The notes under the pieces are model-generated. The model saw only the letters and a program-made list of their open reading frames with translations. It was not told the DNA's origin and did no database searches. A program made the position numbers and the translations under genes. Positions 16,231 through 37,909 of a DNA stretch of 64,000 bases are shown piece after piece (the stretch's first letter is position 1; each line of letters begins with the position of its first letter). The DNA comes from Marsupella aquatica (lineage: Eukaryota; Plantae; Marchantiophyta). The stretch lies in assembly GCA_973895155.1 (NCBI GenBank), contig OZ316899.1, positions 2,997,455-3,061,454 on the forward strand, written 5' to 3'.

Positions 16231-19200
16231 TTGGAGAGAACCATCTGGGATACGGAAGTAGGGTTACCAAAACAAGAGGAAAATGAAGAAATGCCAGTAG
16301 AGGTTGATATAGCAGTTAATAGCTTGGATAGATTGATTACTCATTTAAGTAATCCTATAGAATTTAGGATAAAAGATTGCCCCTGGCACTACTCGGTAGG
16401 GTCCATAAATCTGGACAGAGCAAATATTCCTTTTTCTTCATTTGTATTACATGTTAGTAAAGTAGATGTGGCTGAAGTATACTCAAAACAAATCTTGAAA
16501 GGGACAAGTTGTAAGAAACACAGGAGATGTCCTGAGAATTTAATGATAATTGGATATTGGGTTGGGGCAAGAACTATTTTCATAGAAAAAAGAATCCCTA
16601 GGCTCACACCAGTAATTCCTTGTATCAGAAATGAAGAAACCGGGGAGTTAGGGGTATTAATGGGTATTGAACATGATGGGCGTGGCACGGTTCCCAAGAC
16701 CTCTAACACCGAGAACTACCCTCAACCGATCATAAACCACTTGGTTATGTCGGTCCTCTTTCCTTACGGCAGCTATTCAGCTTGGAAACGCGATACTCTC
16801 CTTGGGTCCACACTTACCGGACCGATTCTTTCACTGGGCTTGTGAATTGTGCACAACTGAGACACCTAATTCCTCTTTAACTTCTTCAGGTATATTTGTA
16901 TTCCGCCCCCGGAATGTACCTCTATGGCTTAATTTCTTAAGCCGGCTGACGGTCTTTTTCAGACTGACTCAACCCACACTTCACCGACTAACACTCTCAA
17001 TCCTCACTGTTCTCTCAGAGTTTGATTTGGGCAGTCTCCAATCAAGGCAATGCGATTGTATTTTGCTCAATAGTTCACCCTATCTGACTTTAATCGATCA
17101 AGCAACAGATATCATAACACTCAACTTCTTGGATGGCAAGAATCTGTGAACTATGCAACGAAGCCAACTCAATTCAAACAATTGCTCAGAAATCCAAGGG
17201 AACTGGTGGTTTACTGATACCCTCCGGTCTAGATTTAGCCGAGAGCTTCCTGTGTTTACAACAATACAGATTAACACTAAAGCCTTGACTAAGAAAAAGC
17301 CCCTGAAACCACGCTGCCCAGGTTTTTATCCTTGCAGCGCTTTCAAAAAAAACAACAGAGATCCTAACCACCACACATGGCCTTCCACCGCGATAATCCT
17401 AAAAAAAAACTATCACCTAAAAACTTGAATGGCCCGGAACCCTGTGTGAACCGAGCATCTACTACTATCTAAGCCAACAGGGCGCTACTTGCCCTGTCCC
17501 ATCCTACAACGGCCGCGCCCTTCTGGCCCAAGCCCTTCTCCTGTCGCCACGTCCTCCTTCCAACCAATGACTGGCCCTCCTTAATTGTCAGATGACCGGG
17601 GGTAAGTCTGAATCTTCCGACTCTGCACCTTCTCCTGCCATCGGCCCCGGCCCGACCCCTTCGGCTTCTGTTTTGCCGGCCCCGGCATCGGTCTCGACAT
17701 CGGCATCTGCATCTGCATCTGCATCCGCATCCTCCTGGGAAACGGCTTGGAGAGCCTTTGCCTTAACTTCCTCAATCCAAGCCTTTTCCCCGATGCGCTC
17801 GGTCTCGATAACCCACGGTTTCACGTTCTGTGTGTCCATAGAAGCAGTACCATCATCTAAACCTGTTACCGCAGCTCCAAGTTGATCCGCAGTACTTACC
17901 TCTACCACCGCTGCCTTCAGGGCCACAGTACCACAAATGTGAGCAGCCATGCTCTCGACTTCCTCCGGAGTGGCTTTAAGGGTTTTAACTTTATTATCGC
18001 CTGGCCCCATGAACGTCTTTGCCAAGTCTGCCACCAACTGCATGGCTTTGCCCCCAGTCACACTTGACAACAGAGAGCTTGGCTTCGGCTTCGGCTTCAC
18101 TATATTTCCGCCTACCATACTACTGTCGGGAAGCCTTTCAGTTGGTGACCCATATCCCGCTTCGGCATACTTCTTCAATTTCTGCGTTTGATTGTCGGCA
18201 TGCCTCTGCAGCCCGATCATCTTATCCTTGGCATCCTCCAATTCTTGAGATACATCTTCAACTTCATCGTTAAGCCGTAGTATCTCGGCCTTGGCCGTCT
18301 TCAACTCCTCATTTAAGATCTGCACGATCTCCAACTCTTGCTTATCTACGGCTGCTTTCAAGGAGTCGTTGATACCTTCCAGTTTTGTGACCTTGTTTGT
18401 CCATGCCTGCTTTGTCCTGGTTAGCTCCTCCTGAAGCTCCTTGCGTATCTGTTGAACCCGGTTTAGGTGATCATTGGCCGCCGTGCACATGGCGTCATCA
18501 TGCTTTTCACGCATGGTCTCCAACCGGTCAAGTAACTTATCATACTTCCTTTGGGCTTCTACCAAGGCCTTTTTGCTCTGGGTGGCCTGCTCCTTAGCTG
18601 TCTTTCTGAGCCTCTCAACTTGGCGATTTAAACCCTGTACCTCTACTTTTGAATCGGCTAACTCTAGCTCTATCTTCGTCAACTTTTCCTTGATCTGCTG
18701 GTTATCCAATTGGTAGTTTTCCAATTGGTTGTTTGCCACGTCCAATTCCTGCTGCCTAGCCAAGAGATCCTGCTGAGTTGGTTGAGCAGACTTCATCTTA
18801 GCAACTTTGGCCTCCATGGAGCGAAGCCGAGGGATTACTTCCTCCTTCTTCAATCGCTCCAATGTCATTGCCTCCTCCAGTCTCGTTTGATCAGCCATTT
18901 CTTTTCTAAGAAATGGCCCGGATTCCAACTCGTTGCCAAAGATTTCTAAGGCTAAGAGTCCACACATGTCTCCATACTCCTTAGCCCGATTTCTTGCATA
19001 GTTTGACCTCCCAGGTAATACTGGCATCTGCCATCGAGGTCGTCTCTCCCAAGCTTCAGCCCGTAATTGGTCAAAGTTAGTGAGAGGTTCGGCTTGCCTC
19101 TCACTAAGCCGTCTTATTCCTTCTGGCCACTCACCTCCTGGTAGCTGGCATTCGTGTTCTGCATTCCGGGCCCCCCACTCCTTAATCTTCTCATGTAGCC

Positions 19201-21475
19201 CGGCTTCAGCTTCCTTCATCTTGTCGAATTCCAATGGCGTCACATCTGGTGGAGGAGATTCTGGCATTTTCTGGTCCTCCAGTTTGCCATAGAAGACCGC
19301 GGGAAGTCTTCTACAAAACCTTCCCATCGTTCTAACTCCTGGGACCGGCCTCTCCCCATGATCGACATAGTCATCGTCGTAATCATCCACATTGACCTGA
19401 CTACCTAACATGCCGGCCTCTCCTCCAAAGCCCCCAATCTCCTCCTCTGAAAATTGTTGGGCTGCAGCTGGTTGACCTTCCACCACGGATCCGTTCACTT
19501 GGGCTCTGTTAGAAGCTTTTACAACCGGCCTCTCCTGGCCTCGGCTTACCTCCTCGTCTGTCTCCGAATCCATTCGCTCGTCATATTTCTTTCTCTCTTC
19601 GGGAGTCATCTTCCTCTCGACCAACTGGATGCCTGCATATGGATTATTGCGAGTAGGCTGGCGTAACGGATTTCTCACTACATCATATGTTACTACCTCT
19701 GGCTCCTTGATAGGGGAATGCTCCCGTTCTCGTGTTGCCTGTGTTGCCGACCTCCTCCCATGGCGTCGTATGTTTAGAGACTCCTTGTCCTCCTCCACTT
19801 CCTCAAGTGGTGCAGTGATCTGCATCCGCTCCTGTATAGGCAACACTGGTGCAAAAGACTGGCTTCTTGCATAACGGCAAAGCAATTGCAGATGGTACCC
19901 TAGTCTAGATACCGCTCCCTCCCCAATGCTCTGCTTCTCTTCGTTTAATGCCTTCTTTAACTGCATTAAGAGATAGTCGTTGTAGTCTCGGCTTGCATCG
20001 ATATTCTCTACCAAAAATACCTGGGCTTTGCCGATTTCTGCTCTCGGCAAGGTACAATGCAATGTGACTCTCAGGAAATCAATCAACTGCCCTATATGTG
20101 GGTTGGTACATTGATTCCTAAAAAACCCATTCTTAGTGGAAGGCCCTGGAAATGACCTGAACTGGTCGTCCGGCAACGTCTTCCTCTGCTCCACCTTTGT
20201 TTTCCTTCCTGTTGGTAAAGCAAACACGGCTTCGATAAGCGCAGGAGTTAATTCGAACACCTTTCCATACAACAGCGTTGTGTTGGAAGAAGCCTCCCAG
20301 CATCCCACGAAGTCCAACAGATCCTCATCCGGTATGTCTACCATTCTCCAGGGCAACCTGACAAAGCCCTCCAACCCAGTGTCATTCATATATCCTGCAT
20401 ATTTGTTATCCTGAACGGCACTGAAGACCTCATCCTCATCTCTTGCGAACTGTAATTATAAATCGGCAGGTAACCTGTTTGCCCACCCTATCATGTTTTT
20501 ATCTTCTACAGCCCGATCTCTAATTGGCCCGGATTCCATCTTGATTGGTCTCTCCAACCTAGTTCGCTTTGCTGGAGTTGCAGATGCCGAACCTCCCTTG
20601 CGCTTCATCTCTTCAGTGCCTGAATACTCCCCAAGAATAGCTGCCTTTGTCCACTTTGCAGTGTGACCCTTCAATTCCCAAAGTGGTTGCCCGGCGTTCT
20701 TGATTGCCTCCCTGATCCCCACGACCTTATTCTCCCGAATTAGCAATTCGTCAAGCTCCGCACTGGTGGGTGTCCATGAGAACTTTTCCAATACCTCCTC
20801 CGTATCTATGAATGCCGATTTGTGAATTCCCCACAATTGCGCAAGCTCTGCTCGTTCTCTGGCTGCGCGCTCCGGCTCAACGTCTTCATACGTAGGTATC
20901 AGCTGCCTTGCTTCTTCAAGCAAACAGCCCCAAAACTTCCCTGCCTGATTCACTGTGTTCATTCCACCGAATGCCAAGAACCTGCGCAATTTCTCAAACC
21001 ACCTCCCCCGTTCGATCGGCAGCGGATTCGCTAGGTTGATCGAACAAGCAATTGCACTAGTGTACAGAGTGTCGGTCCCCTCCTTACGAAGCCGCCTCCT
21101 GATGGCTTGTGTGATCAAGCCCTGATTAGGTCATAACCCTAATCGCGACCGTTGGATCAGATCCCATCACAATTTCCCCCGAACATATTGAAATCGGCTT
21201 CAATCTTTATAACTCCCTAATTATATCTACCTAATCTTTATTTAGCCATTATTTTAGGCTTAACTAAGTACTTCGTGATCCTGGCACGGCATCACAATGG
21301 GGGAGAAAAAAATAATTGGGACCCATTCAACTTATTAGAGTTAAGTAAAAGATATTCAGGTGTGCATATCAAATGTAGTCAAGAAGTATATCACAATCAA
21401 CATTGGAAAGAACTAGAAGAACAAGCTTTCGATGAGCTAAGCAACGGTTTAGGGTTAAACCATTGGAGGAAATGA
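16231..21475 (+). CDS. H extra ORF downstream of INT (~207 aa; 16231-16680 joined to 21302-21475), split by unit C; unknown function
   Basis: Removing C and one TSD joins ...LMGIEHDG to GEKNNWDPF... in frame. The ORF-track start is TTG; the first ATG is at 16291. Confidence 0.6.
16681..21296 (-). mobile_element. Unit C: 4616-bp solo-LTR-like element with an internal long ORF
   Basis: Perfect TSD ATGGG at 16676-16680 and 21297-21301. Minus-strand ends TGTGATGCCGTGCCAGG...GGGAACCGTGCCACG (A: TGTGATGCCTAGCCAGG...GGGACGCACCACA). Confidence 0.9.
17588..21118 (-). pseudogene. LTR-borne accessory ORF of C (1176 codons, one internal TAA at 20456-20458)
   Basis: The 220-aa and 933-aa ORFs share one frame with 22 sense codons between them. 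Homologous to A/B (FPGPSTKNGFF.N.CTNPHIG, LPRAEIGKA, VPG.RT.G.F, PESPPPDV.P, ADNQT..LKK). Confidence 0.88.
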
Positions 21476-21514: not shown

Positions 21515-24500
21515 GTGTGCTTACCAGAGCGACTGGTAAGCAAGGCCCGACACAAGAACCAGAGAAGAAGACCGAAGCAGGAACGGCCGCCAAGACAGCA
21601 AGACGACAATCTAGTAGCAGGTGGAGCAAGTAGAACGACTATGTTGTCCGATCAAGCCAGGGAAGAAAGAAGAAAAACTCGTTACAATCCTATTAACGAC
21701 CATAGCAGTGAGGGAGAGAAAGACGAAATGGAACCGGAGAAAGAATCAAGACTGGAGACAATGTCCATTACGACGGTGGGGTTTATCAGGTCAAAGGCGC
21801 ATCAGGAGTTTGTGAAGACACAGTCTTTGACGGAATTCATCAACCTGGATTGGGAGATCACTCGGTATAAAGATCATGACATTGAGGGTTTCATTTTAAG
21901 TTGGAATGAGCAAAAGAACGAAGGCAGATTCCTGAATCAGATCGTCAACACTAGTTACCAGACTGTGATGGCTGCTTTTGGATTGGACAAAGGTGGAGCA
22001 AAAATCACCAGGAGGGTTGCAGCTACATATGAGTCGAAGCACTTTCATGAGAGTTATTGTAAGCCGGAAGGATCAGGATTCATGATGAATCAATGTACAT
22101 CGAATGTGGTTAGACAGAGAGCGGAGTTCATTAGTCATGCAATGATGTGGAAGAAACCAAGAAACGAGTGTTCCAGGTACATTATCAAATTAGTGGAGGA
22201 TTGCGAGGAAGGAAGAAAGAATTGGAGTACGTTATTTTACGAGAGTTTGCGCAAGGCGTTAGTAAGAGCCAAAGATCATTTGAGGAGTTATGAAGACAAC
22301 ATTACACTGGAGGTGGGAACGCACACGAGAATATTGTTGCATCATTGTCTAACTACTGGGGGAAGATCGAGGAAGCCAACTGAGTCAACAACCAAACGCT
22401 ATCAACTGAGGGGGAAGAAACAGAGTAAAAGAGCCCGAATAGAAACGGAGTTGGTGGGAATCAAAGAGTCAGGGGAGAAAGATTCAAGTCCAAGACTTGG
22501 AAGTGAGGAAGGACCCGAAGTGGACACAGGAGATATCAGTAACAACCATCAAGAACCAGAGGCGACGAAAGAAGAAATTGAAATTACTCAGGCAAAACTC
22601 AGGGAACGAGAAGATGAGGAGGACAAGGGTAGTGATCAGCACATGGAAGTGAACCAAGATACCAATGGAGGAAAGTTGGGAGATGACATGATCAGGAAGG
22701 AAGAAACCAGTGAAGGAATGGTTCTAGAAATGCTTGCACCAGAACGGACGGACGTAACTACCAAAGTGAATAGTACTAGGGCGGGGATTCATTCTAAATC
22801 CACAATGGGAGTCACAGCTCCAACTCCACCGCGAATGACAAACACCGAGCTGGAAATGTTTTCAAATCTCAGCAGAGAGGAAATCAAGCGAAGACTCAAC
22901 CGAATCATCACAGACAAGGAGCAGACCTCCAAAAAGGGAACCAAGCAAGTAGGTCCAATGCTGAGGAAAACTGAAACTATCACTCCACCAATTCCGGGAA
23001 GAACACAAAGTCAAGAAGGTATCCCTGATACAGTACCCATTTCTAAAAAGAGAGGGGTAGATCAAGTCATATTGCTGAATGAACTTCTAGGGTCTGTTAT
23101 GAAGTACCATAATAGTGGATTAGCAAAACAAGAGGTTGCAACAAATCGATGGATTTTGCAATTGAAGGATCAGGCCAAAAGCAAGCTAGAGGGGGTATTA
23201 TTTGATGTCACAAATGTCACATTTCAAATACCATAGAGGATGGTACTTGAAATGTACAAGGACCAAAAAGGACCATGGAAGGGCTCAGATGTATTTGAAT
23301 GGATGGCCAAGATTAGACAAGCATTACTGTGTAGCCCAAGAAGTAAAGGTGATGATTTCCTTGGTGTTGCCCTTCACTACCCACAGCCGACATTGTCACT
23401 TAAGGTACTAAGCTTAAGTAGTACTTTCTTGGAATTCAAATACCTCATAACTCGTGTTGACCCTATGGTTTGAACTCTATGCAAGTTCCCAAGTCCATTG
23501 TACATGGCGCGTTAGGTTGTGAGTCCTTCTACAAACATCGTTACGTGTCATATACTCGTGGACGCACTACACCTGTAAGTTTTTCTTAATCTTGAGTAAG
23601 TTTTTCTTGAGGGAAACAAGTTGCCCCGACATTGCGATGCAGAAATTTGGTGGTACTCACGGATGCACTATACCAAGTAAGTTTTTCTTGCGAGAAACAA
23701 GCCCAAACATTGCGTATGTTGCAGAAATTTAGTGGTACTCACAGACGCACTATACTTGTAAGTTTTTCTTGCAAGAAACAAGCCCAGACATTGAGAGAAA
23801 CAAGCGCGGACATCGCGTTGCAGAACTTTTGTGTTACCTTGTCCTTTTCGTGTTCGACATTCACCTTCTTTTGCTCCTGTTTGGAGCTTCAATGTTGCGT
23901 TTTGCGTCGCATTGCCATGCATTGTGGTCTAAGGGATATTAAGGACTGTAAACATATGACCTCGTAGCGAATGTTCCTTACTCTGCGACAGGAAGCTGCG
24001 GCATTACTCTGCGGCATTACTCTACGTTTAGACCTTCATTACTCTGTGGCATTACTCTGTGTTTAGGAGAACAAACATTGTAGCTCAAGGGCGGTTGAAG
24101 TAGGGTGAATCTCTACCCTCACACATGATCTCATGGTGTTAACCCAACATCATGAGTAGTGTTTGGGATGAAGCAGCGAAAGCCAAAAGAGACCGACAAA
24201 ATTTTAAGAGAAGAGAGCGTAGGGCAGGGCAAGCAGTGAATGCAGTAAGAACACATGCCAAAGAAACGTTACAAGATGCTCAGGGGCAGGCAGAGAAGCT
24301 GGTGATTCAGGAGGCTGCCATAGAGGCCGAGAAGTTGCTTGCTAAGGCTAGACACAAGGCTGCAATAGAGGTAGAGCAGTTGATTGCTCAAGCTAGACAC
24401 AAGGCTACCATAGAGGCGGAGAAGCTGCTTGTTCAGGCTGGACGAGAGGCTGCAATAGAGGCAGAGAAGCTGCTTGCTAATGCAAGAGAGCAGGCTGACA

Positions 24501-27500
24501 ACTTCAAGGATGAAATTCGGCTACAATTGGCTGGGGAGTTTGCAACTTTGGAATACCAAATTCATGACTTGCAAAATCAAACTATTGATTTGGAGTCCAG
24601 GTTGAGATCAGCGGAGGAGTGCAGTGCAAATGATCAGTCTTTTGGAGATGCAACAGGGGTGGCAACTCAAGAGGCTATGCGTGCATCAGTTAGAAGGAGA
24701 CAACAGAAGTCTCGTTTGAGGAAGCGGTGTCTACTTGGTGAGGTAATCGAGAATTATGATGCCTCTGATATCCCAAACAGAAGTGTCCGTAGCCAGACCC
24801 AAGTTGTCACTGGGATGGTAAAGCACTTTTCCGAATTAACGAGACGACATAATTTTGCTGCTAAGAAGATCATCATGGAACATTTCTGGACTCATAAGGG
24901 AATGGTTCAATTGCACCCCACTTCACTAGGCTGCCCTAAAGCGGATCTGTCATGGAGTACAGCTATCGATGATATAAAGAACACTTTGAAAACAGTCAAG
25001 TATGCAAGGCGTAAAGATCATAAAGCAGCCAAAGATATTCTACTATCTTCTTTTATAGGTCCCAAGATTGTGGATGCAAGATACCAATCTTCTCTTGCTC
25101 GAGCATTGTGTATCAAAAGAGCATCTGTGTATGCTGCTAGTAAGAAAAGAATTCTGCTAGATGGTGATGCAACACTGCGTTTTCCAATGGGTCAGCGAAA
25201 GGAAAGGAGTGATTGCCTTTCTCTGGAGATTCGAGGTGATGTTGCGTGGTTCTGGGAGGCGCTTACCAGGCCTGATCCAGGCAAGAAGGATTTTGTAAGA
25301 AAAAGGATTGCAAAGAATGAATATGTGGAGCACAGGACTCACCGCCTTGAGGATACTGAGGTAATTGCTAATTATGTAGTAGTGCATCTCATTTCTAATC
25401 GTGTAGTAAGTCTGCAAGTGTAGTAGTGCAAGTCTGTAATCAATATTGGTTTATTTTGTGCACTACTCATTTTGTTCACTTATGTTGCACATGGTGACAG
25501 GCAGAGTACTTTTTCAAGTTCCAGGAATGGCTGAAGAAAGAACATAAAGCTTACACTATCGGTTTGCGATCTTTTCAAGCCCTCAAACCTTACTTCATAC
25601 GTACAATGAAAGATAGGGATGTCTGCTGTTGTAAGCAACATGTTGAGATGCACCTACTTTGCAAAGCCTTTGCCAAGCAACGACAAGCTCAACATCCTGT
25701 GGGTTGCACATGTCAATGTGTAGTTTGTTCCCCTATAATTGTTGCTGGAGTGAGTCATAGTATTGATGGTAGTGTTGTCGACGGTACTTGCAGTACCACT
25801 ACTCATGTGAGTCTGAATAGTTATGATGAACCCTGCAAAGCTCACAAGTATACACAATGCTCTGTGAGAGAGTGGTGCGCACAGACCTTATGTAAGAAAG
25901 GAGAGGATGATCTTTGGCACAAGAGGAACTGTTTACTAGGTAGTTGTGAGATCTGTGGGCCAGGGTTGTTAGAGTTGTGTCCGTGGGAGGAAAGAGTGGA
26001 TGAAGAGGATGAGTTTGTGGTGTGGCAAACATATGAGTATGTTAACCTGGATGATTTACCAAAGCCAAAGAGTGCCAAAAAGAAGAAATTCCAGAATCGT
26101 GATGATGCAGAGATTTCCAAGGTTAGAAAGAGGCTTAGATTAGTAACTAAAGTCACCTCAATGGTGGTGTTTATGGAAAAAGTAACAGCTACTATAGAAA
26201 CGTTTATAAACATGACTTCTATGCTAGATGGCAAGCTGAGCAGTACCAGAATTGTCTCAAGTCCTTTCCTAAAGGCACCATAGTGAGTTCGATTGACTTT
26301 GCAGAGAACTACACGTTTGCAACGCAAGATGAGGTACAATCCCTTCACTGGGATAATAGACAGGTCACTATTCTTGTTCTGATCACCTACCGGCACCAGT
26401 ATGACAAGGAGGAGGAGGATCCTGTGGTGTACAACAAAATGGGCCAGAGGATCACCAGATTTATTGAGGCTGATTACCACTTCTTTATTTCAGATGACAA
26501 TAGCCATGATACCTTCTTTGTGCAACACAACTTGGATTTCCATTGGAAGTGGATGAAAGAGAAAGAGATTTTTGTAGACAATCACATTATGTGGTCAGAC
26601 GGGTGTGCAGCACAGTTTAAAGCTTGCCACCCTTTTTCCTATGTGGCAAAATACAATCATGACTATGGGGTCCCACTAATGTGGTGTTTCCATGCCTCGG
26701 GGCATGGGAAAGGTGTACAAGTAATTACTTGCCAGGCCCTTTTTTTGCTTCATTGTCTATAGTATGTAATAGTGTTACATTTTTACGTGCTGATTTATGC
26801 GATAGCTTTGAAGTTTTTAGCGTGCAGGATTTGATGCATTTTTGTTGTATGCTTGCTTCCACAGGATGGACTAGGACCTGGGGTGAAGCAAGCTCTTCGA
26901 AAGGAGCAGTTGCGGAAAGAAGGAGGGCATCCAATGGAGGGTGCCAAGGATGTGGTCAAGTTTCTTAAGGAAAGGTTTTGCCTAGGAAAGCAAATGGAGT
27001 ATGACAAGAAGCAGGGTGTGAGGCGTTTTTTCTGGGAGGTCGGTGTGCAAGAGGTGGAGCGGAGTTCAGGCCTAGAATGTTTGCCTATCAAAGGTGTGAG
27101 ACAAAAGCATTGCTTTTGGGGATATAGCCCTGACAATCCCATGATGCTGAAATGTAGACAGTTGGCTTGCTTCTGCATCAACTATGCACTTCATCCAGAA
27201 AGTCAAGAACTCTGTGAAAATCAGGCTCATGTTCTACCGTGGGAGGTAGATTATGTGTACCCCAAAAATGCTGGAGAGATTGCATCCATTATTGAAGACA
27301 TGGGTGGCGGGTTGGATAGTGAGACCTATGATTACGAGGGCTACATTGGTGATCTAGTTGAAGTGGGTGACTATTTTGCTGTGAAGGCTGAAGAAGACAA
27401 CATTTGGAAAGCAAAATTCTACGTTCTTTTGTGTACAAAAAGGGCTCATGTTGTTGAAAATGATTTCATAGACGACTATTCTGCTGAATTTTATAAGGGC

Positions 27501-30500
27501 GATCGAGTTTTGGCAGGCACTTGGTTTCAGCAATATGGCAGGCATCCGACTTGCTTTGTTCGTAACGACAAATCTAGCATTAGCTATTGCCGATGTGGCA
27601 TCCGTGATTCACATAAAATTTGGACTTGTGCCAACAAAAATACTGAGGGGATCACCAGGGTTCAAGCTTGCCCCTAACACTTATCAAGCAATTTTGGATT
27701 CAGCGAACAGGTAATTTTCTTTCACTGCCAATATTTATCTGTTTATTGAAGACACTAAAGACACTCATTGGAAGAGAATAGTTACATTGGGTAGATTGTT
27801 GGTTGTGCTGGTTTAATTCTAATTGCAACTTTATTGACTGCAGAGGAAATCCGAGTGTGGTTGAATTGAACCTGTACTCCTAAAGTTCTAGGTAAGCAAA
27901 TTAAAAGCGCAGATGCTAATGTTTTATGAGGTGGTCGTCCTCACTTGATGTTGGTCCCTCAATCTCAAAACTCTGTGAAAAGGCACTTTGTGACATTCTT
28001 GTACACTGATTCATGTCTTTGACCAATCTAGTTTATTGTGTGCAGGTGTTCAATTTGATGACTGCGCAATGCACATGGCCCATGATTCTCAGTGGCAAGT
28101 AAACTTGCAACTCCTCCTTACCGAATACTAGTTCTTCTTTGTAATACCTATTGCTAATACTTGTAATATTTATTTGCTAATACTTAATGCCTTTTCTAGT
28201 ACCTACTTGATAATAAATACTCATAGTACCTAGTACATAATACTTAGTCAAGTATTAAATACCTTAAGTACCAGTACTGGTTACATATGTACCAAGTACT
28301 CAGTACCATAAGTACGCAGTACCAACTTAAGTACCTTAAGTACCAAATACTCAGTACTTTGAGTACCTAGTACTCAATACATAATACAAAGTACCTAAGT
28401 AAGTACCTAGTACTCAGTACCTTAAGTACATAGTACCTTGAGTACATAGTACCAAGTACCATAAGTACCCAGTACTCAGTACCTTAAGTACCCAGTACTC
28501 AGTACCTTAAGTACTCAGTACCTTAAGTACCCAGTACTCAGTACCTTAAGTACCTAGTACTCAGTACCCTGAGTATCAAGTACTTAGTACCTTGAGTACC
28601 TAGTACTTAATACCGAGCTCAATACGTTGAGTACCTGGTACTCAAGACCTGGCTTTAGTACTCAGTACTTGCAGTCCGACCCAATACTCAATACTATAGC
28701 CTAGGCTAATAGTTTTATACAGTTGAGTGTTTGATGTAGTGGGTGTTGTGAGACTAGTAGCTATATTGCAAAAGCAAGCCACTGATACATTTTTAACTGC
28801 TGGACCTGTCTCTTTTTTCATGCAGGTGATATAATGAGTCTCTCTTTGTTGCCTAGAGGCACGACAATCACTACCCTTGTTTGGCTAGATATGGATATAA
28901 TTTATCATAAATTTTAGTCATGTGAGTTGTGGCTAGCAAATTAGCTAGTTGAGTAGTGGCCACAGGACCATTGTGTCTTCGTTCAGCAGCATTTTGTGAT
29001 CATGCTTCTGTTTCAGAATAAGCTTGAAACGCAATTTGAACCTTGTCTATCAAATCTATAAAAGTTCTCATCAAATGCCAATGGATGTCCATATTCTTCT
29101 CTGTTGCCTTCCTGGACCTCTGGTGCAACTTTAATTATCTCAATTCGGTGATCACCTTAGTCTGTTCCTCCTGTTCGGTGTAGTGCCTTAGTTCCCAGAA
29201 CTTTGCAAAGGGAAGCAAATTTTAGCTCTCAACCTCCATCCAGATCTTATTTTACCCCCATGCATGTTATAGCATACTGTTACTTTTCCTAAATTAAGCA
29301 TTCGTCCATTCATGGACCCAGGTTATTCACAGTTCATGTTGTCTTTTGAGATCTGCCTTAGTTTGATTTCTTTATTTCAATCATCAAAGGAGGAGCATGA
29401 TTGTTTCACAGTACCAGTATGTACACTCATTCAGTTTTTTCCTGAGTGTACATACTGAGATCACTATGAGCATCAATGGCATTTTCTATTCCAAGGCAAA
29501 TGATTGTTATGAAGGGTTCACTTTCTAAGGTTTCTCACAATAACTAATTGCGCTAACATCTACATTATGATCCAAACAACAACCTGGATATAGGTCGAAA
29601 GCTTGGCATTGTTGAAGGCCAACATTTTGGACTATAAACAAAAATTAAACTCATTCATTGTTTCTTCATAAACACGAGTCACAAACACTCGCTCAGTTTA
29701 TTTACAGTGCAAGTCCTGTTGCTTTCAATAGTAAATGCAATACCATGCGGATTACAAAATTGACTGTAACAAATCCATGTAATCCATTGAACTGTTTGGC
29801 CTGTAGAATTCAGTTCACTTTTCCGCGATTAAAAAAACTACTCTAGCAATTGTCAAGTAGGCAACTCTATTTCTCTATAGTTTCCAATACATCAAGATTT
29901 GTACAAAATGAGACATCTTGTAGTCACTCAATTTATTTATGCAAGCTAGACTTTAGCTTTGTACAGTAAATCAAGTACTCACAAGATACAAGATTGATTG
30001 ATTGTAACTAATCCAAGCAGAGACAGAAAGAACCACACTAAACTGTTGGGGCCTGTAGAAAATCCTGGCCACAAAATCCGTATGCAAAAACACTACTGCA
30101 AAAATTGCAGCTCTATATATGTCTCTACAATTCCCAAAACATTCTCCTCAGATCACCTCATTCCTAATCTAAACCTTGATGGCGAAGTGCGGCTAAAATA
30201 CCCTCCAATTGGTCCAAAAGGACAGATCCTCTTGGTACGAGGGATCGTTCCACATTGGTGGACCTTGGGTGGGATCTAGAAACTGTCATAGTGAGAGGCC
30301 AGGGGACCCAACTATGGGTAGGAACCCCAAGGAGAGACAAAATTTCCACTGATAGTACCCCATCTTTTGCAGCCAAGGCCACTGAGCACCTTTGACACTG
30401 CAAGGCAACAGCCCGGATGTAGTCCATCTGCTCCTGTTCGGTGCAAGCTCGTAGGTCTGAAGCTCCTAGCCCCAACCAGACTGAAGCGCTATCCCGAATC

Positions 30501-33500
30501 TCAGCACGAATGGGGGTTGCCTGCTTAAACACCGCATCAACAATCACAACTTCAAAACCATATGTATCAACACCCTCCCCTGCATGGCCACACACCTGCC
30601 GGCCGAGCTCCTTTGATGTGCCACAAATGCCTCCATGTCCTAGCCGATGTGAGCATGCTTTATAAATAAAGCGCCGAGGATGGGGGAAGGTTGAATGAAA
30701 GTTCACAATATGAACCACGACATCTCGAAATGAAGCAGACTGCCCTGCTTCCACGACCTGCTCAACTTCTGTTACAGGAGTCCCCATTCTTCTGCGTCAA
30801 CAAGATCCTGCAAAACTACAAGTCCAATACTCAAATCAATACTCAAGGATTCCCGATGGATATTCAATGACAAAACCTTGCTTGCACTACCACAACATGA
30901 CACACAATCCTCAAGGGATTACACTACTACTCAAAGGTATTGAACTAATACTCGCAGGAATTTGAAACAATACTCAAACGCGTAACTTACATAATACTCA
31001 AAGGTATTTACATAATACTCAAAGGTATTTACATAATACTACAAGGTATTTACATAATACTACTGACAAGGTATTTACATAATACTACAAGGTATTTACA
31101 TAATACTACAAGGTATTTACATAATACTACAAGGTATTTACATAATACTACACGGTATTGTGACAATACTACAAGGTATTATGATAATAATACACGGTTT
31201 TGTGATAATACTCAATGGTATTGAGATAAAAATCAACGGTATTGAGATAATAGTACTTGAGGTATTATGAAAATACCAGGGGAATTGACTAACACCTGAA
31301 ACTCTTACAGTAATACCTTATTGTATTAGACTAATACCCGAAGGTACTAAACTAATACTTAGTATTAGAGTAACAATCACAGGTACCAGGTAAATACTCT
31401 GTGACATGAAAGCACAGCCAGAGAAATTACTTGAGTCTGGTAGTGCATGTAAAGTGAGTATTCAAATCTACATAATATGCATGTATGAAGTGAGTGAACC
31501 CTAAACCAAATAAACCTGTGACAATACATAGAAATTGACTGGTACAAAGGATGAGCAAGAGGAGAGTAAGAAAATTTACCATCAATGCATCCACATTGGG
31601 TATCTAGACAGACATCTAGGGTTCATGAATGCTCAGAGGCAGACAACAATGTCAACATAGTAGTCCTATTTAAATTTCCTAGCTGATCCATGACCTCTTC
31701 CTCGTCCTTTGACAGGTGGTTTAACCTTTTCAACTGACTTTAAGGCAACATTACCACCCTTGTCATGAGCAGGATCCAATCCTAGACTGATAGCAGCACC
31801 CCTTAACTTCCCCTTAGCTTGAGAGGAGCTTGTGCCATTCTTCTCCTCGGCCTTTCGCTTTTTGCTACTCCCCTTACAAGACTCAGAGCCAGGCTCAGAG
31901 TCATTAGAGACATTCTCCACCTGAGTGACCAAACCAGGTTCTGGAGCAGCACCCTTTTTGACCTTCACAATTGAGAGATTCACCTCACCCTTGGACTCCG
32001 GGGCTGAAGTCTGCGTTTGAACTAGAGTAGGAACTGACTTGATGTCAACTTTTGAGACCCTCAACAACTCATGGTGTACATGTGCAGCTTTACCAACAGC
32101 CTCATGATATTCGATAGACTTCTTCACACTTTCTTGCAGCGCAAAACAATATCCCACAATTAGCAATTGACCAATATCCCCGCTAATACCAATGTACGAC
32201 AAAGCCAGATCATACTATGCCAACAACTCGAGTGACCAGGTTTAGTGATTACCTTTGAATATAACTTGGTCACTTTCTTATGCTTCAAGGCTTGATTCTC
32301 CCTCCTTCCCTTTAAATTCAAGGCATTCTTGCAATACAGATCACTAAGGCTCTTTTGAAAAGAGATAGATTGTTCTTCCAAACCCCAATCATCTGCTAGC
32401 TTCACTACATCTGGATGGTCCACTCGGGATGAACCCCAGCACTTCAGCCAGGCTGGATGAAACACTTCAGCACAGGCTAAACACTTAGGAGGTTTACTGT
32501 CACCGTTTCGAAGCAACGGGAACAAACAACTTGGATGATAGCAATGTCCACACGATGTGGGAATCCAATTGTTACAAAAGAAGCCAAGAGAGCAAACAGG
32601 GCATTTGCTTATGGGAAAATAAGCCTCCTCTGTCTGCGCAGGACAAATGATACTAATAGGGCATACATAAATTGCATGAGAGGTATTCAAGTGCTCCTTT
32701 AGTCTTGCGCACTCTAGATTGAGAGCATCATAGGACTTTGTCAATTTGTATGCTGTATGATCTAGCTTGTGCAAGGTCTGTTTCCCATACTCCTGTTCCT
32801 CATCCAACTTATTCAACTCTTTCATAAGAACTTGAGCATCTGCGACTACATCAATGCGCTCTGCTTTGAAGTAGCCAAGTTTGCTTGCAGTATATTTGTT
32901 TCATTGCAACATGAGACATATTTTTCTCGCAACCCTTTGCAAAGTGCCTGCACAAGTCCCGGCCAACACAACAGGATTGTTATAAGCAACTGAAAATCAC
33001 ATTCAACAAAGATAATATGAAAACAAATGTAGCTTTAAACAAAATGAGATCATTTACCTCGTCTTCAGAATGCTCTTCGTCAGGATCTTGCAGCAGTTCA
33101 AGATCCTCAGATACTTGAGCTTGCTCTTTGACCTGAGCATGGATGCGTCGTTGTACGTCGTGGATGATATCAGTGAGTTCATTCTTTTGCACTTTCAACC
33201 TTGACAATGTCGTTTGAATTGAGTTGATTCGATCAGTAGCCTCATTCTGAGCTGCTATGAATTGAATGGCATCTTGTGTAGACTTCTGCATTTCAGGGCC
33301 AAGCTCTGCAAGACTAGCCTCCACTACCTCCAACATTGTTTCAAGAAGTGTATTCTTCTGGTGTGGAATTGGCGTGCCAGTAGTGACTCCAGTGCAAAGT
33401 TTTTTGGTTTGAGCTTCTGGAAAACCTATGAAACTATTTCCTGGTGACATTTCATGATTCGGACCACCTACCTGAGAAAGGGACTCACCTTGCTCTTGCT

Positions 33501-35803
33501 CATTTGCCTCTAGTCCTAACACCGTACCTGGAGATATTGTATCTTGCTGCAATTGGTTCATGTTTTGTGGGAAGTTTTGACTACTCGAATGAGGACCCGA
33601 GGCTTCGGGTGACTTGAGCTCTAGGTTTGCCGGTTTCTCCTCCCCAGGTGATTCACAATGTGCTCCACTCGCAACGGACTGTGTTCTATTGAAGAGGTCT
33701 AGAGGAGGGATATACTTTGTCTCAATCCTCTTCCACGGTGGCGAGTTTCTATCGATTGGAGACTTCCTTACAAACCTCAACCAAAGCTGCCCTCTATGCT
33801 TGTCTGCACCACAAGCTGCCCAATTCACAGGTCTTTTTAAGATCCGCTCATAGTACAAACCTTTGGCAACGTCCACAGTGTATGGTTGAAACTTTCCGAT
33901 TCCGTCCAGCGCACAGGTAAGCATGGCGATGTCGTCGGCAGGAATCCCCTTAACGCCATCCTTCTTGTAGCCGTTCTTCCCAGACTTGTTCCCAAAATAC
34001 TCCTCCAACACCTCAGCGGACACGTCTTCACTTGTGAGCTCCTTCGGAATGCTTCCCACATTGGGCAAGCCAAAGACATTATGGAAATGATCGATGTCCT
34101 TCACAAACTCATCAACTGTCCACTCTTCTGATGAGGGGACCTTTACAAGACTCTCACCGTGTGATTTTGGTGGTAGCTTGTGACTCGTGGACTTTCCAGG
34201 CATTTCAGAAGACATACCTGCTGTGTAGCTTGAGTTCTCCTAGCTGCTCGCTCCAAGCGTTGGCAACAAACTATTTGGGCGCAAACCTGCACTATGCAAC
34301 TCCGCCCGAGTCCCTTGAAAGCGCGTTACTCCAGAGTCTGACTCGTCCCTTCCAGTGCCTTGCGCCTAAATTACAACACAAGAATGTGAGTTCAATGTCA
34401 TCTTATTTGAAAAGATTGAATGTGTGCCTAATGCGTGGCCTAGATCATAGAAGACATTCAATATTAAACAAGTGGGGAAGAAAACAATCAGAGCAACTTT
34501 CCGAGTGTCCTCAACTTTCAAAATTGTAGCTCAGGTCCTGTAACTCTTCAATCTCCACAACGCAAACGAGACTGCAAAAAGTTCCAGAGATTCAAATGCT
34601 TGCAGCCCTCGACTAAAAGCAACTTCCTGCGCCAAAATGCAACGTCATTCCCTCCCGCATTCCCTCCCCTGCTACCTAATCAAGGATCACAATGTTGCGG
34701 TCTTCTCCAACTGGCACATTGCGCAACATTCAAACTGGAGTACGCATCGTGAAAGTTGATTCAACGCGACAAAAAGAAAATAGAAAGGAAGTGCGCACTT
34801 TGCGCCCAGGTCTCCCTTGATTGTAGGCAATGCTACGGTTTGGATCATCCTTCTAGCAGGAAGGGTCAAGATCCAACAATGCTACTCCCTCAACCACCAC
34901 CATTGATCTTCATTGCCACCACGACACGGTCCGGATTTGCTGACCTTTCTAATTTTGAAATGATAGGAGGTTACGGTAGTAATGTCTTTTCGGCCCTTCC
35001 TCCCTCCAACGTGATTGTACTTGCAACAACCTCCTCCCTCATCATTACATGACTTGTAGTACTAACTGTACTATGAGCTTTGTGGTAGGGGTGGTATTAG
35101 GAGGGGTATTATTTTGCTCAAATTAGACCCCCTCTAGCTTGCTTTTGGCCATCAGCTCCGAGAAGCTGAGTTAAAGATCACCAACAATGACAAATTAGAA
35201 GTGATAAAGCAACAATTGGTAGATGGACACGCGGAGCAGCAGCAAAACATCAAAGAATTGGTAACGGTATTGGCTAAGATGATAGGCAAACAGTGCCCTG
35301 AAGTCAGTTATTGGGAAGAAGCACTAAAAATGTTGGATATTGTGAAGCAGAAAATGAATGAATTGGAAATACAGGTACAGATTGTGACAGCAGACAAGGG
35401 CAAGGTAGAAAGATCAAATGAAGAACTACGAGTAGCCCAAGCACTTTTGGAGAGGAAATTGGAAAGCCAGCGCGATCAATTGCAGGAACTTCAACAAAAA
35501 AATGATGAGGCTGAAAAGACGTTAGGTCACAAGCGTGGTGAATTGGAAGAAATGACAGCCAGAGAGATATCACTATCTCACGAGAAGGAAACTGGGGAAG
35601 TGGCCATACAGCGGTTGCAAGAGAAAAATGAGAAACAATTACAGGAGTTGAATGAAGTGCTGAAGGACAACGAAGAATTGGAGACCAAACAAGAACTACT
35701 AGAGGAGCGAATCCGAGATTTAAAGACTATGGTGTTGAATTACAGAGAGAAACAACTTAAAGCAATCATCAAGGAAGTCACAGGAAAAGAGCCGAAGAAG
35801 TGA
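21515..35803 (+). CDS. H internal accessory ORF before the 3' LTR (768 aa; 21515-23172 joined to 35155-35803), split by the TIR transposon; PMD-like plus C-terminal coiled coil
   Basis: Removing 23173-35154 gives an uninterrupted ...WILQLKDQ-LREAELKITNNDKLEVIKQQL.... The motif LTEFINLDW...IEGFILSW...VMAAFGL...GFMMNQC...NWS parallels A-G. Confidence 0.8.
23173..23205 (+). repeat. Left TIR
   Basis: GGCCAAAAGCAAGCTAGAGGGGGTATTATTTGA; reverse complement of 35118-35150 with 2 mismatches. Confidence 0.93.
23575..23795 (+). repeat. Subterminal imperfect ~80-bp tandem repeat (about 2.5 copies)
   Basis: Recurring gtaagtttttcttg..gaaacaag...cattgcg...gcagaaattt.gtggtactcac.ga.gcactatac. Confidence 0.8.
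23995..24065 (+). repeat. Short CATTACTCT repeat cluster (4 copies)
   Basis: cattactctgcgg / cattactctacg / cattactctgtgg / cattactctgtg. Confidence 0.75.
24152..27710 (+). pseudogene. Spliced Sola2-like DDD transposase (exons 24152-25360, 25501-26720, 26865-~27710, possibly more); frameshifts near 26209 and 27590
   Basis: Phase-0 GT-AG introns 25361-25500 and 26721-26864 join in frame. Motifs FQALKP...RDVCCCKQH, (IKHDFYARWQ)...IDFAENY...QDEVQSLHW, WSDGCAAQFK and SGHGKGVQ|DGLG. Superfamily assigned from recalled Sola2 motifs plus the 4-bp TSD. Confidence 0.75.
28190..28670. repeat. AGTAC-based tandem array (core ~23-bp unit AGTACTCAGTACCTTAAGTACCC)
   Basis: Dozens of AGTAC/GTAC cores spaced 7-9 bp apart; best conserved at 28460-28570. 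Confidence 0.9.
30164..30787 (-). CDS. Cargo ORF or exon (207 aa), putative Zn-ribbon OB-fold (RPA70 C-terminal-like)
   Basis: Y-x2-C...C...C-x-H followed by YGFEVVIVD...ASVWLGLGASDL resembles the RPA1 DBD-C pattern. Family assignment is inference. Confidence 0.5.
   Translation of the reverse strand: MGTPVTEVEQVVEAGQSASFRDVVVHIVNFHSTFPHPRRFIYKACSHRLGHGGICGTSKELGRQVCGHAGEGVDTYGFEVVIVDAVFKQATPIRAEIRDSASVWLGLGASDLRACTEQEQMDYIRAVALQCQRCSVALAAKDGVLSVEILSLLGVPTHSWVPWPLTMTVSRSHPRSTNVERSLVPRGSVLLDQLEGILAALRHQGLD
30990..31400. repeat. 21-bp tandem array CATAATACT(A/C)(C/A)AAGGTATTTA: 8 good copies (30990-31150), then degenerate
   Basis: cataatact starts at 30990, 31011, 31032, 31053, 31078, 31099, 31120 and 31141. 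Confidence 0.92.
31666..32825 (-). CDS. Cargo exons containing a RING-H2 finger (32472-32603) followed by a basic low-complexity tail
   Basis: CPVC-x13-CGHCYHPSC-x14-CLAC fits C3H2C3. A probable intron lies near 32135-32248 (AAG|GTAATC donor on the minus strand). Confidence 0.7.
32980..34215 (-). CDS. Cargo exon (411-aa ORF; probably spliced at ~33060) with PMD-like domain and coiled coil
   Basis: WTVDEF...VFGLP...YFGNKSGKNGY...PVNWA matches the pattern of the retroelement accessory ORFs. GAG|GTAAAT donor after HSEDE. Confidence 0.65.
   Translation of the reverse strand: MSSEMPGKSTSHKLPPKSHGESLVKVPSSEEWTVDEFVKDIDHFHNVFGLPNVGSIPKELTSEDVSAEVLEEYFGNKSGKNGYKKDGVKGIPADDIAMLTCALDGIGKFQPYTVDVAKGLYYERILKRPVNWAACGADKHRGQLWLRFVRKSPIDRNSPPWKRIETKYIPPLDLFNRTQSVASGAHCESPGEEKPANLELKSPEASGPHSSSQNFPQNMNQLQQDTISPGTVLGLEANEQEQGESLSQVGGPNHEMSPGNSFIGFPEAQTKKLCTGVTTGTPIPHQKNTLLETMLEVVEASLAELGPEMQKSTQDAIQFIAAQNEATDRINSIQTTLSRLKVQKNELTDIIHDVQRRIHAQVKEQAQVSEDLELLQDPDEEHSEDEVNDLILFKATFVFILSLLNVIFSCL
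35118..35150 (-). repeat. Right TIR
   Basis: TCAAATTAGACCCCCTCTAGCTTGCTTTTGGCC followed by TSD ATCA. Confidence 0.93.
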
Positions 35804-36039: not shown

Positions 36040-37909
36040 TGAAATGTTACATTTTAGCCAGTTAAGATTAGTAGCAATTAAGCTAATAGTTGAGTTATAG
36101 TTAAGTCAAAATCAAGACTTTAAAGCCTTCACAATGTTAACCCTAGAAACCTCTAGACGAACTTCATTTTTCTAGTCGAGGTTTAGTTTTTGTGATATAG
36201 CGACAACTTTACGGAGATGGAGCAATCTGGAGTCCTCTGTCTGATTGGAGTAACCATTGAAGCTATTTGGGGCATGCATGGTAGCGAGCTAGTTTATGAA
36301 GGATGTGATATTCCCTTGGAAGGTGGGAAAATGTGCGCTTTAGGTCCAAATGCTCGTAGAGCTAGAATGAACAGAGAACACCAGGATGCAGGGTCGTCGA
36401 ATCAAAAGCAAATCAATCATTTTTGTAGAACGGTTGGATCAGGCCAACACCTGTACAATTTCTTTGTGCAAATCAACACTGTTGTGTATCAAGTATGGGA
36501 AGAAGCTGGATGTCAATTGTTTGGAGTGCCCGGTCATGAATTTCACAAGCAACTTGGAACCCAGGAGAGAGACCGTCACCATGTAATGAATGAGTTCTGG
36601 GTAGTGAGAATTGCAGAGAACCGCAGCAAGAGTACTCAACAGATACTGGGATTCCAGAGAATGAGGACTCACCCCACATACCGGCAATCAGAAGCAAGCG
36701 TCAGTGAAACACCAGTAGAACCGGTGGAGGTAGCCATTCAAGCGCTTAACGTTGGAGCCACCGAACCAAAGGACAAACTTTTGACTGATCGTTCCAAAGA
36801 ACGATTAACCGAAAGACAACCAGTTAAGAGATGCACAATCCAGTAGCGAGTAACAGTTAATAGTTACTGTGACAAGTAACGATTAACCTGTGCCTTTAGT
36901 AGAATAAAGCAGTTAGAAAAACTAAATAAGCAGTTTGACAGTTATAACTGCTAATTGTTAGAGTAAGTTGGGCAAACTTGCCCGTAGCAGAAATATAGGG
37001 TAGCAGAGTAGGAATGGGAGAGGTCTTTTGTTGTGGAAACTTTCAGGATCAGAAATCTTGAGAGGCAGCCCAGGAGGAGGTAGTGCCGGATTGCTAGATC
37101 TGGAGGTAGATGGAAGCCCATGGAAGAAAAACCATGTAAAGAAATTGATGTGAAAGATGCAATCAAGGCCTATTGGCAGGAATTCAGGGAGCATTTGATT
37201 GCATAGCTTGTATTTGTTGTATGTCAGTAGAATCAAGACTAAGAAATTGATATTGAAAAAGAGATGGCTGGAAATATTAACCTTTGACAATGGAGAATTC
37301 ATTTGGATTTGGTTGGAACCTATAAAAGGAAATATCAGAATAGTATGGCATGTGGTGATTGAGATTACAAACAGTTAAAGGAATCCTTGCCAAAGTGAAA
37401 TGTTGAGTAATGGATAAGAGGCAACTTCTGAGTGAGATCCAGAGTAGGTAACATGGAATTAGCTACCTCTGATTGGTCGTTTAAATTGGAACACATCCCA
37501 TTTGGGCTACAAAATGCCCCAAATGAATGTAAAGCCCTGATTGAGAGTTGAGTGAGAATTATTAGGCAGGAAGAAGAAGAGTCAGTGTCTGAGGAACTTT
37601 CTACAATGGGTTTGGAAATCCTATTTGAAGAAACCTTAACTGAAAGGGAAAAGAGAAATTGACATTCAATTCAAGTAACAGGCGGAAGATCAAACTAAGA
37701 TAGTTAGATCACTGTCTCGAGTAGTCGTACAGGTCATCACTAATGGTTTGACAAAAAGGTTAAATGGTAGATGACAAGTGAATGAGAAATCGGATCAATT
37801 GAAGCCGTATGATGTTTAATTGATACAAAGAAGGATAGAGGAGGAGTTAGGAGTTCCAGAGGAGGGTTAACTCCACGAGTTGGCAACCAGTCAACTTCAG
37901 CGGTTAACA
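36040..37909 (+). repeat. H 3' LTR (1870 bp)
   Basis: Direct repeat of 7763-9630, followed by TSD ATAAC. Confidence 0.95.
36217..36846 (+). CDS. ORF inside the H LTR (209 aa; open here, broken in the 5' LTR), putative Zn/OB-fold protein
   Basis: ATG start and 209 codons open. The 5' LTR copy has TGA at 8132-8134 where this copy has CAA (36409-36411). Motif spacing matches the cargo ORF at 30164-30787. Confidence 0.55.
   Translation: MEQSGVLCLIGVTIEAIWGMHGSELVYEGCDIPLEGGKMCALGPNARRARMNREHQDAGSSNQKQINHFCRTVGSGQHLYNFFVQINTVVYQVWEEAGCQLFGVPGHEFHKQLGTQERDRHHVMNEFWVVRIAENRSKSTQQILGFQRMRTHPTYRQSEASVSETPVEPVEVAIQALNVGATEPKDKLLTDRSKERLTERQPVKRCTIQ

Follow-up and report, generated by a model that had tools for sequence, protein, structure and literature searches.

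An 11,978-bp transposon of probable Sola2 type in Marsupella aquatica with an antisense RING-H2 gene that appears to be conserved in its lineage

To our knowledge, Sola2 is among the least studied of the DDE/D transposon superfamilies. We know of no solved structure, Pfam model or demonstrated activity for it, and it is regarded as a mainly animal group. The Sola superfamily was reportedly described by Bao and colleagues in 2009, with Sola2 said to occur in Hydra, sea urchins, molluscs and hemichordates. We analyzed a 64,000-nucleotide (nt) stretch of DNA from Marsupella aquatica (contig OZ316899.1, positions 2,997,455 to 3,061,454; hereafter the window, in which all positions are counted) and found a transposon of 11,978 bp at 23173-35150 that has a transposase gene and, on the opposite strand, a gene for a coiled-coil RING-H2 protein. 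On all the evidence, we think it likely that this is a class II transposon of Sola2 type that inserted into a retroelement open reading frame (ORF) and that its antisense RING gene is conserved in the lineage.

The closest described elements are from dictyostelids. These Sola2 elements are 10-15 kb long, carry Fanzor genes as cargo, and have 4-bp target-site duplications (TSDs) and terminal inverted repeats (TIRs) of 12-22 bp (PMC3627910). In plants, Sola elements have been mentioned for Azolla (PMC6786969) and tabulated for Ceratopteris (PMC6890710), and in Cupressus sempervirens no DNA-transposon superfamily is said to be more abundant than Sola2 (preprint 10.64898/2026.07.23.736688). According to a broad survey, plants have few or no members of most DDE superfamilies. 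An earlier note on the window, made from its letters, had suggested that a giant, cargo-carrying plant lineage of Sola2 might be undescribed. Because Sola elements of ferns and conifers and cargo-carrying Sola2 elements of Amoebozoa are on record, that suggestion is only partly tenable. What did stand is narrower: in the literature (Repbase and Dfam were outside this search) we found no description of a conserved coiled-coil RING partner or of a two-gene plant architecture. The conserved partner gene is the new part, and we infer its function.

Ends, insertion site and transposase

We found that the ends of the element are well defined. An inverted-repeat analysis gave a single outstanding pair, 33 nt long and complementary at 31 of 33 positions (94%; Table 1). 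The 23-nt terminal word, GGCCAAAAGCAAGCTAGAGGGGG, occurs twice in the window, both times at the TIRs, with no occurrence expected (100 shuffles). When 23173-35150 was removed in silico together with one of the two flanking copies of ATCA, an unbroken host ORF of 768 amino acids (aa) was restored, starting at 21515 and ending at 35803. Excision that kept both copies of ATCA left a stop at codon 558 of that ORF. Since excision from TIR to TIR with one ATCA restores the host ORF, we conclude that a transposon inserted here with a 4-bp TSD, a length assessed at this one insertion. We also looked for the empty site that the earlier note had proposed as a check; within the window, only the element's own two flanks matched. 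The 12-kb unit is a real, recently inserted cut-and-paste DNA transposon, most probably of Sola2 type.

The transposase gene has three exons and two introns, both GT..AG, and encodes about 1,070 aa. A further intron may follow after about 27710. Its coding part accounts for about 3.5 kb of the 11,978 bp. Streptophyte homologues are colinear with frame 2 (24758-25363), frame 1 (25468-26208) and frame 3 (26211-27587), and the motifs DFAENY, SDGCAAQFK and HGKG..D are all found in the encoded protein. The copy in the window has two 1-bp frameshifts, one at about 26207/8 (exon 2) and one at 27587 (exon 3). In addition, it encodes a tyrosine at 27184, where homologues and other copies have the conserved cysteine of a CxC...C motif. 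Thus, what the earlier note had read from this part of the sequence (TIRs, a 4-bp TSD, the clean interruption of a host ORF, and a spliced transposase with the three motifs and two frameshifts that takes up about a third of the element) was recovered here, with one change. The second splice junction, which the note had placed at HGKG/DG, is better set at HGKGVQ/DG because the family consensus is HGKGxxDG.GG.VK.

Relatives of the transposase were found in plants and animals. An exhaustive phmmer search with a 159-aa core gave 1,580 relatives at E<=1e-3, the named ones from Klebsormidium, the liverwort Calypogeia fissa and Priapulus. With a profile search we also reached molluscs, echinoderms, hemichordates, insects, Hydra and the moss Ceratodon purpureus, the animal side including sea urchins. 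The nearest named relatives of both genes of the element are from streptophytes: Ceratodon, Calypogeia and Klebsormidium. Among the 120 best matches of a streptophyte-only profile, named proteins came from these three alone (in Ceratodon including the V chromosome), and there was no fern or conifer protein. The aspartates of DFAENY, SDGC and HGKGxxD were each conserved in at least 90% of the rows in alignments A1 and A4. Pfam scans of the transposase pieces and of full-length homologues gave nothing above the cut-offs. A protein atlas placed the transposase near clusters of DUF7869; hmmscan gave no confirmation and we rejected this candidate. The Ceratodon genes M758_1G230800, M758_1G187400 and KC19_11G036500, annotated as hypothetical proteins, are this transposase. 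In Ceratodon, copies lie on chromosomes 1 and 11; the V sex chromosome has an annotated homologous transposase as well (KC19_VG074600).

We used an AlphaFold model of the Klebsormidium homologue to examine the fold. The model (mean predicted local distance difference test score [pLDDT] 86.9) has the order b1-b2-b3-a-b4-a-b5-a. The three aspartates are on b1 (DFAENY), after b4 (SDGC) and on the next helix (HGKGxxD); that is, at the canonical sites. Residues 1-197 superpose on the integrase cores of prototype foamy virus, Rous sarcoma virus and HIV and on IstA and TnsB with Z of 8-10.4; Foldseek alone gave weak E-values. As modelled, the transposase has an RNase H-like fold and is of the DDD kind.

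We compared the family to the two dictyostelid transposases of class Sola2 for which Bao and Jurka (2013; PMC3627910) give full sequences. The catalytic blocks are MDFKENI, FWSDGAKHFKS and YHGKSDVDRHF in Sola2_DFa-2 and CDFKENI, FWCDNARHFKS and YHGKSECDQHF in Sola2_PPa-1 (PMC3627910). They have the same order and similar spacing in both published proteins and in the family from the window; the first block (DFKEN versus DFAEN) and the spacings were judged by visual comparison with the sequences in supplement 3 of that paper. From the second aspartate to HGK there are 38 residues in Sola2_DFa-2 and 36 in the transposase from the window, and the HGKSxxD variant is also found within the window's family. 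With hhalign, family profile A1 matched a 68-aa block of Sola2_DFa-2 (89.7%, E 1.9e-6) with the second and third catalytic blocks aligned, a comparison with one reference and with one block of an 888-aa protein. Based on the motif blocks, the fold, the 4-bp TSD and the similarity to a published Sola2 transposase, we accept the element as Sola2-type. We consider this assignment highly probable. The Sola2-like DDD transposon of the earlier note is in this sense supported and not proven.

Several other properties of the transposase were observed. Exon 1 contains a 45-bp tandem repeat (3.9 copies, 24312-24487) that codes for heptad-rich units like AAIEAEKLLAKARHK, an N-terminal stretch for which the liverwort and moss homologues show no conservation. 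The C-terminal domain (GD.FA...FYVL.CTK...VL.G.Y..GR; 27290-27586 in the window, residues ~300-416 of model m8199734c53df) had Foldseek matches to the BAH domains of EBS, AIPP3 and polybromo. The probabilities were 0.84-0.99 (0.97-0.99 for EBS and AIPP3) at E-values of just 0.06-0.16. These BAH domains are readers of histone marks. It is possible that the BAH-like domain is a chromatin-reading module for target choice, a candidate that we give as a lead only. Added domains were also noticed in family proteins (P0199, P0234, P0246 and P0331): some members have a Peptidase_C48 (ULP1-like) domain, and the Klebsormidium nitens protein is annotated with leucine-rich repeat domains. These may be further added modules, or fusions in the gene models.

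The antisense RING-H2 gene and its linkage to the transposase

The second gene is read mainly from two ORFs, of 411 and 221 aa, on the minus strand (Table 1). The 221-aa ORF contains the finger C-x2-C-x13-C-x-H-x2-H-x2-C-x14-C-x2-C, which has all eight ligands of the C3H2C3 signature as given by the RING-H2 pattern C-x2-C-x(9-39)-C-x(1-3)-H-x(2-3)-H-x2-C-x(4-48)-C-x2-C. Of these ligands, the moss family of this gene conserves the first six. Curated RING profiles matched at E 0.008 (zf-RING_16) and E 0.043 (zf-RING_2), both under their gathering scores, and a Pfam scan of the second-gene ORFs gave nothing above the cut-offs. The N-terminal domain is a small helical module that we found in the second-gene family only; compared with the plant mobile domain of Pfam (PMD) it gave no match even at E<=10. 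None of the element's ORFs had similarity to the rest of the window by tblastn at E<=1e-3, so the second gene is without a paralogue there. We looked in public assemblies for the exact sequence of the 411-aa ORF and obtained no record.

A structural model of a member of the second-gene family has the small helical N-terminal domain, a disordered linker and a long coiled-coil hairpin (pLDDT >90); its RING region was modelled at pLDDT 50-69. Neighbours of the second gene in the protein atlas were RING/BRAP2 clusters (weak score, 0.77), and those in AlphaFold-DB were RING and coiled-coil proteins, also with weak scores. A fold search with the model gave generic coiled-coil matches only.

We found homologues of the second gene beside the transposase in moss. 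Ceratodon locus L002 has an annotated gene for an 848-aa protein with a weak RING match, about 6 kb downstream of the transposase and convergent with it. By BLASTP, the first ORF of this gene (450 aa) is colinear with the two larger second-gene ORFs of the window. The similarity is in the N-terminal block (YFG.K..K.G.K...A.GL...PVNWA; E 0.003) and in the finger (CPVC...NN..P.SCGH.YH..CL; E 4e-9). A search with the 450-aa ORF gave about 18 relatives on moss-like contigs. Against the profile of this moss family (A3), hhalign aligned the 411-aa ORF over its N-terminal domain (88.5%, E 2.7e-6) and the 221-aa ORF over its finger (97.3%, E 2.8e-11).

The same arrangement recurs at other loci. At three Ceratodon purpureus loci the transposase (plus strand) is followed by the RING gene (minus strand), convergent as in the window. 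Two of these are on chromosome 1 of one isolate, 3.5 Mb apart, and one is on chromosome 11 of another isolate. The ENA contig L010 has an intron-less transposase that is 26-40% identical to that of the window. About 8.6 kb downstream, on the opposite strand, is a homologue of the second gene (98.6%, E 7.9e-16; E 1e-6 by BLASTP with the 221-aa ORF). The transposases of the two-gene loci are only 26-45% identical over the aligned blocks. That the same order and orientation recur beside transposases this divergent argues for a conserved partner over a chance passenger. The antisense gene appears to be a lineage-conserved second gene, and the element appears to be a two-gene element. The earlier note had spoken of cargo, a term that does not fit: a RING-H2 gene with convergent homologues at the three Ceratodon loci and on L010 is not arbitrary content.

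In Ceratodon we were able to locate one end of the element. Loci L008 and L007 are 96.5-99.6% identical from L008:4022 and L007:4552 onward and unrelated to the left of these positions, which gives a sharp left terminus, GGGTGCGGTTTCTATCGGGGGT. In common with the window's TIR it has a leading GG and the motif CTAnnGGGGGT. The Ceratodon element exceeds 20.8 kb, and about 6 kb separate its left terminus from the transposase gene. Boundaries of similarity between L002 and L007 were also considered as element ends and were rejected, since they are masked runs of N. Exact scans of Joint Genome Institute metagenome contigs gave no occurrence of the terminus from the window and none of the Ceratodon terminus.

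The second gene is a putative accessory gene, whose product would most likely be an E3-ligase-like factor with a host protein or the transposition complex as its target. In the mechanism that we propose, the transposase would bind the TIRs, excise the element and integrate it through cuts staggered by 4 bp. The copy in the window, being frameshifted, would no longer make its own transposase, and in-frame copies of the family could mobilize it in trans. The product of the antisense RING gene would serve as the accessory factor. A more far-reaching version is that a streptophyte-associated Sola2 lineage has retained, in hosts as far apart as mosses and the source of the window, a dedicated coiled-coil RING-H2 partner gene convergent with the transposase; that its E3-ligase-like product is required by the element, for example for the removal of a silencing or repair factor of the host or for regulation of the transpososome; and that this is a new two-component class. 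We put this version forward tentatively and give it somewhat less than an even chance.

Copies in public sequencing runs and other features of the locus

The element is one member of a multi-copy family whose members also occupy other insertion sites. We compared Logan contigs of four public runs (among them X1, X2 and X4; two organism labels) to 22000-27999, a region that includes the left 4.8 kb of the element. In X1, one contig of 1,934 nt matches 22000-23202 without a difference, at a word depth of about 25. This very insertion is therefore present in the X1 sample. From 23173 inward the word depth, which is a different quantity from copy number, was 114-255 in X1 and hundreds to thousands in the other runs. 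In X2 and X4 the depth was 0 over most of the flank (22,400-23,000), which indicates that the element is present in these samples, apparently at another site or sites. In X1 there is a contig that begins exactly at 23173, and in X1 and X4 contigs with different upstream sequence stop at that position. In all four runs a branch at 23205 leads into the subterminal sequence of the right end.

The contigs also carry information on how copies differ. A joint from 23212 to 25058, which skips 1,845 bp, is present in X1 and X2 and indicates an internal-deletion, non-autonomous derivative. An additional A behind 26207, a deletion of one base at 27587 and A>G at 27184 were each at full depth in all four runs. 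The two frameshifts and the change from cysteine to tyrosine are therefore found in the copy in the window only, or in a minority of the copies; the contigs of the runs are in frame at both frameshift sites. The branches at 25365 and 26723/4 fall where the two introns start and so point to subfamilies in which the introns, unlike the exons, have diverged. The copy in the window differs from the X1 contigs at 32 or more of ~4,830 positions, so this copy is about 1-3% diverged. A 13-bp repeat unit at 23996 varies in number among copies. Words of the second gene were found in the same four runs at 0.62-0.71, compared to 0.67-0.75 for words of the transposase. They are present also in the runs of organism B, where the flank (22,400-23,000) mostly has zero depth.

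Table 1. Coordinates of the element, its genes and its repeats in the window
Feature	Position	Strand	Remarks
Host ORF, 5' part	21515..23172	+	Rest of ORF at 35155-35803; retroelement coiled-coil accessory ORF
Left TSD copy, ATCA	23169..23172		Removal of one ATCA copy with the element restores the host ORF
Left TIR	23173..23205	+	Begins GGCCAAAAGCAAGCTAGAGGGGG; inverted-repeat analysis, contig breaks in runs
Subterminal 81-bp tandem repeat, 2.5 copies	23595..23793		Repeat analysis
Transposase exon 1	24152..25360	+	Donor GT at 25361; residues ~200-403 conserved in liverwort and moss homologues
Transposase exon 2	25501..26720	+	CCCK.H zinc-type motif, H.F.ARWQ, DFAENY (D1), SDGCAAQFK (D2), HGKGVQ then GTAATT
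Transposase exon 3	26865..27677	+	Opens with third catalytic Asp (HGKGVQ/DG), then CxC zinc-type motif and beta-rich C-terminal domain
Dense array of short AGTAC/GTACT-containing repeats	28190..28690		About 0.5 kb past the transposase stop
207-aa ORF, doubtful gene	30164..30787	-	No homologue found
21/42-bp tandem array (TTACATAATACTACAAGGTAT)	30906..31373		Downstream of the last clear ORF of the second gene
Possible C-terminal ORF of second gene, 178 aa, basic, low-complexity	31666..32202	-	No relative found
Second gene, second ORF, 221 aa	32160..32825	-	End of coiled coil and RING-H2 finger
Second gene, first ORF, 411 aa	32980..34215	-	N-terminal domain (YFG.K..K.G.K ... A.GL ... PVNWA), linker, start of coiled coil
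Right TIR	35118..35150	-	Inverted-repeat analysis; contig branches
Right TSD copy, ATCA	35151..35154		Restoration of host ORF

The array that follows the transposase gene is dense: there are 59 matches to the AGTAC-type motif in 500 bp, compared to 2.5 per kb in the window as a whole. AGTACT motifs are also present in both subterminal regions of the element. A comparable AGTACT-rich array occupies the corresponding position in Calypogeia fissa locus L001 (13160-13517), where a second one follows after another 5 kb (18000-19000). The Ceratodon element has different repeat arrays in its place. The AGTAC arrays could be binding sites, a terminator region or a source of small RNA. Outside the element, the N-terminal domain of the host ORF (residues ~91-380) has distant paralogues at four other sites in the window (19556-20416 on the minus strand, 39258-39686, 1531-2064 and 59944-60573; 22-25% identity, E 1e-9 to 1e-11), in other retroelement-like units. 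The neighbouring long terminal repeat has a 209-aa ORF at 36217-36846 with a 95% identical copy at 7940-8565; by tblastn at E<=1e-3 this ORF resembles none of those in the DNA transposon.

Alternatives and comparison with known transposons

Several points weigh against a Sola2-type transposon with a lineage-conserved antisense RING gene. The second gene is highly diverged from the moss family, such that the N-terminal domain and the RING finger alone can be aligned. The further exons of the moss gene, including a second RING, have no detectable counterpart in the window, and neither gene of the element is matched by any Pfam family. At Calypogeia locus L001 and at L009, the second locus of the ENA assembly with L010, the 10 kb that follow the transposase gave no homologue of the second gene. 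In the window's own genome the linkage was read directly at this copy, the run comparison having covered the left 4.8 kb, and word depth in the contigs supports "several copies" only. In Ceratodon, the end of the element that was defined is the left one. The link to Sola2 itself is drawn from motifs, TSD length and the one 68-aa block.

The alternative that survives best accepts the transposon and takes the RING gene as a passenger, either a captured host fragment or an independent insertion, with its co-occurrence in moss due to repeated capture or to an ancient hitch-hiker. The divergence of the gene, its lack of a Pfam-level family and the related transposases at L001 and L009 without a second gene within 10 kb would fit a passenger, and dictyostelid Sola2 elements do swap unrelated 3' cargo (PMC3627910). 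However, domain order, orientation and position are repeated beside transposases as different as those of the window, the three Ceratodon loci and L010. Further, the second gene has open ORFs of 411 and 221 aa in the window and of 450-500 aa in 14 members of its family, and the gene has no paralogue elsewhere in the window. We therefore regard a mere passenger as unlikely and favor a conserved partner.

It is also conceivable, with a still smaller probability, that "Sola2" is a mislabel and that the transposase is from a DDE/D lineage that merely resembles Sola2, such as an unnamed superfamily or another Sola subgroup. The hhalign match to a single Sola2 block was 89.7%, not >95%. Moreover, the 33-nt TIRs and the ATCA duplication depart from the 12-22 nt and AT-only sequences of the dictyostelid elements, and the protein atlas placed the transposase near DUF7869, for which the Pfam scan gives no confirmation. 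In contrast, the order and spacing of all three catalytic blocks match those in published Sola2 transposases, the TSD is of 4 bp, and Hydra, sea urchins, molluscs and hemichordates have abundant members of the family, which is the host range reportedly given for Sola2 by Bao and colleagues in 2009. These observations make a mislabel improbable and the Sola2-type assignment the better one.

Finally, it is very improbable that the 12-kb unit is a composite in which a shorter transposase element and unrelated DNA lie between matching ends (from neighbouring copies or a nested insertion): the internal arrays at 28190-28690 and 30906-31373 could be junction marks and the run comparison covered the left 4.8 kb of the element, but exact excision from TIR to TIR with one TSD restores the host ORF, there is no additional TIR copy or long direct repeat inside the element, the four runs contain second-gene words and transposase words in the same share, and the two-gene layout recurs in other taxa.

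A young, multi-copy family on the plant side, with defined ends, a TSD and copies that are apparently in frame, would be a practical start for a first Sola2 transposition assay. If the RING partner is indeed kept in distant hosts, it would be a new kind of transposon accessory protein, and it would offer a concrete way to study how DNA transposons cope with host control in genomes of the bryophyte type. If the partner were a mere passenger, the finding would shrink to a well-annotated new Sola2 family.

Two-gene DNA transposons are known in plants: PIF/Harbinger (transposase and a Myb-like ORF), CACTA/En-Spm (TnpA and TnpD) and the VANDAL Mutator-like elements (anti-silencing VANC). Like the element described here, these are autonomous elements with a second, family-conserved protein beside the transposase. 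They differ in that they belong to unrelated superfamilies and have unrelated accessory proteins. In addition, accessory functions such as DNA binding and anti-silencing are experimental in those systems, whereas for the RING partner we infer one. The Sola and Sola2 repeats of Azolla, Ceratopteris and Cupressus sempervirens share the superfamily label and come from non-flowering plants, as does this element, but they are repeat-library classifications without element anatomy.

The dictyostelid Sola2-Fanzor elements (DFa-2 and PPa-1/4/5; PMC3627910) are the most similar. Both they and the element in the window have a large DDD transposase with DF.EN, (S)D....FK and HGK[GS]xxD, a 4-bp TSD and short TIRs; both are in the range of 10-15 kb, with the transposase a minor part of the length, and both carry a second protein. 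In the dictyostelids, the TIRs are 12-22 nt and the TSD is AT-only, compared to 33 nt and ATCA here. The host there is amoebozoan (Sola2 is also found in animals), and here it is a streptophyte. The partner there is a Fanzor/TnpB nuclease that is swapped among families. In contrast, the partner here is a coiled-coil RING-H2 protein that appears to be conserved across distant hosts.

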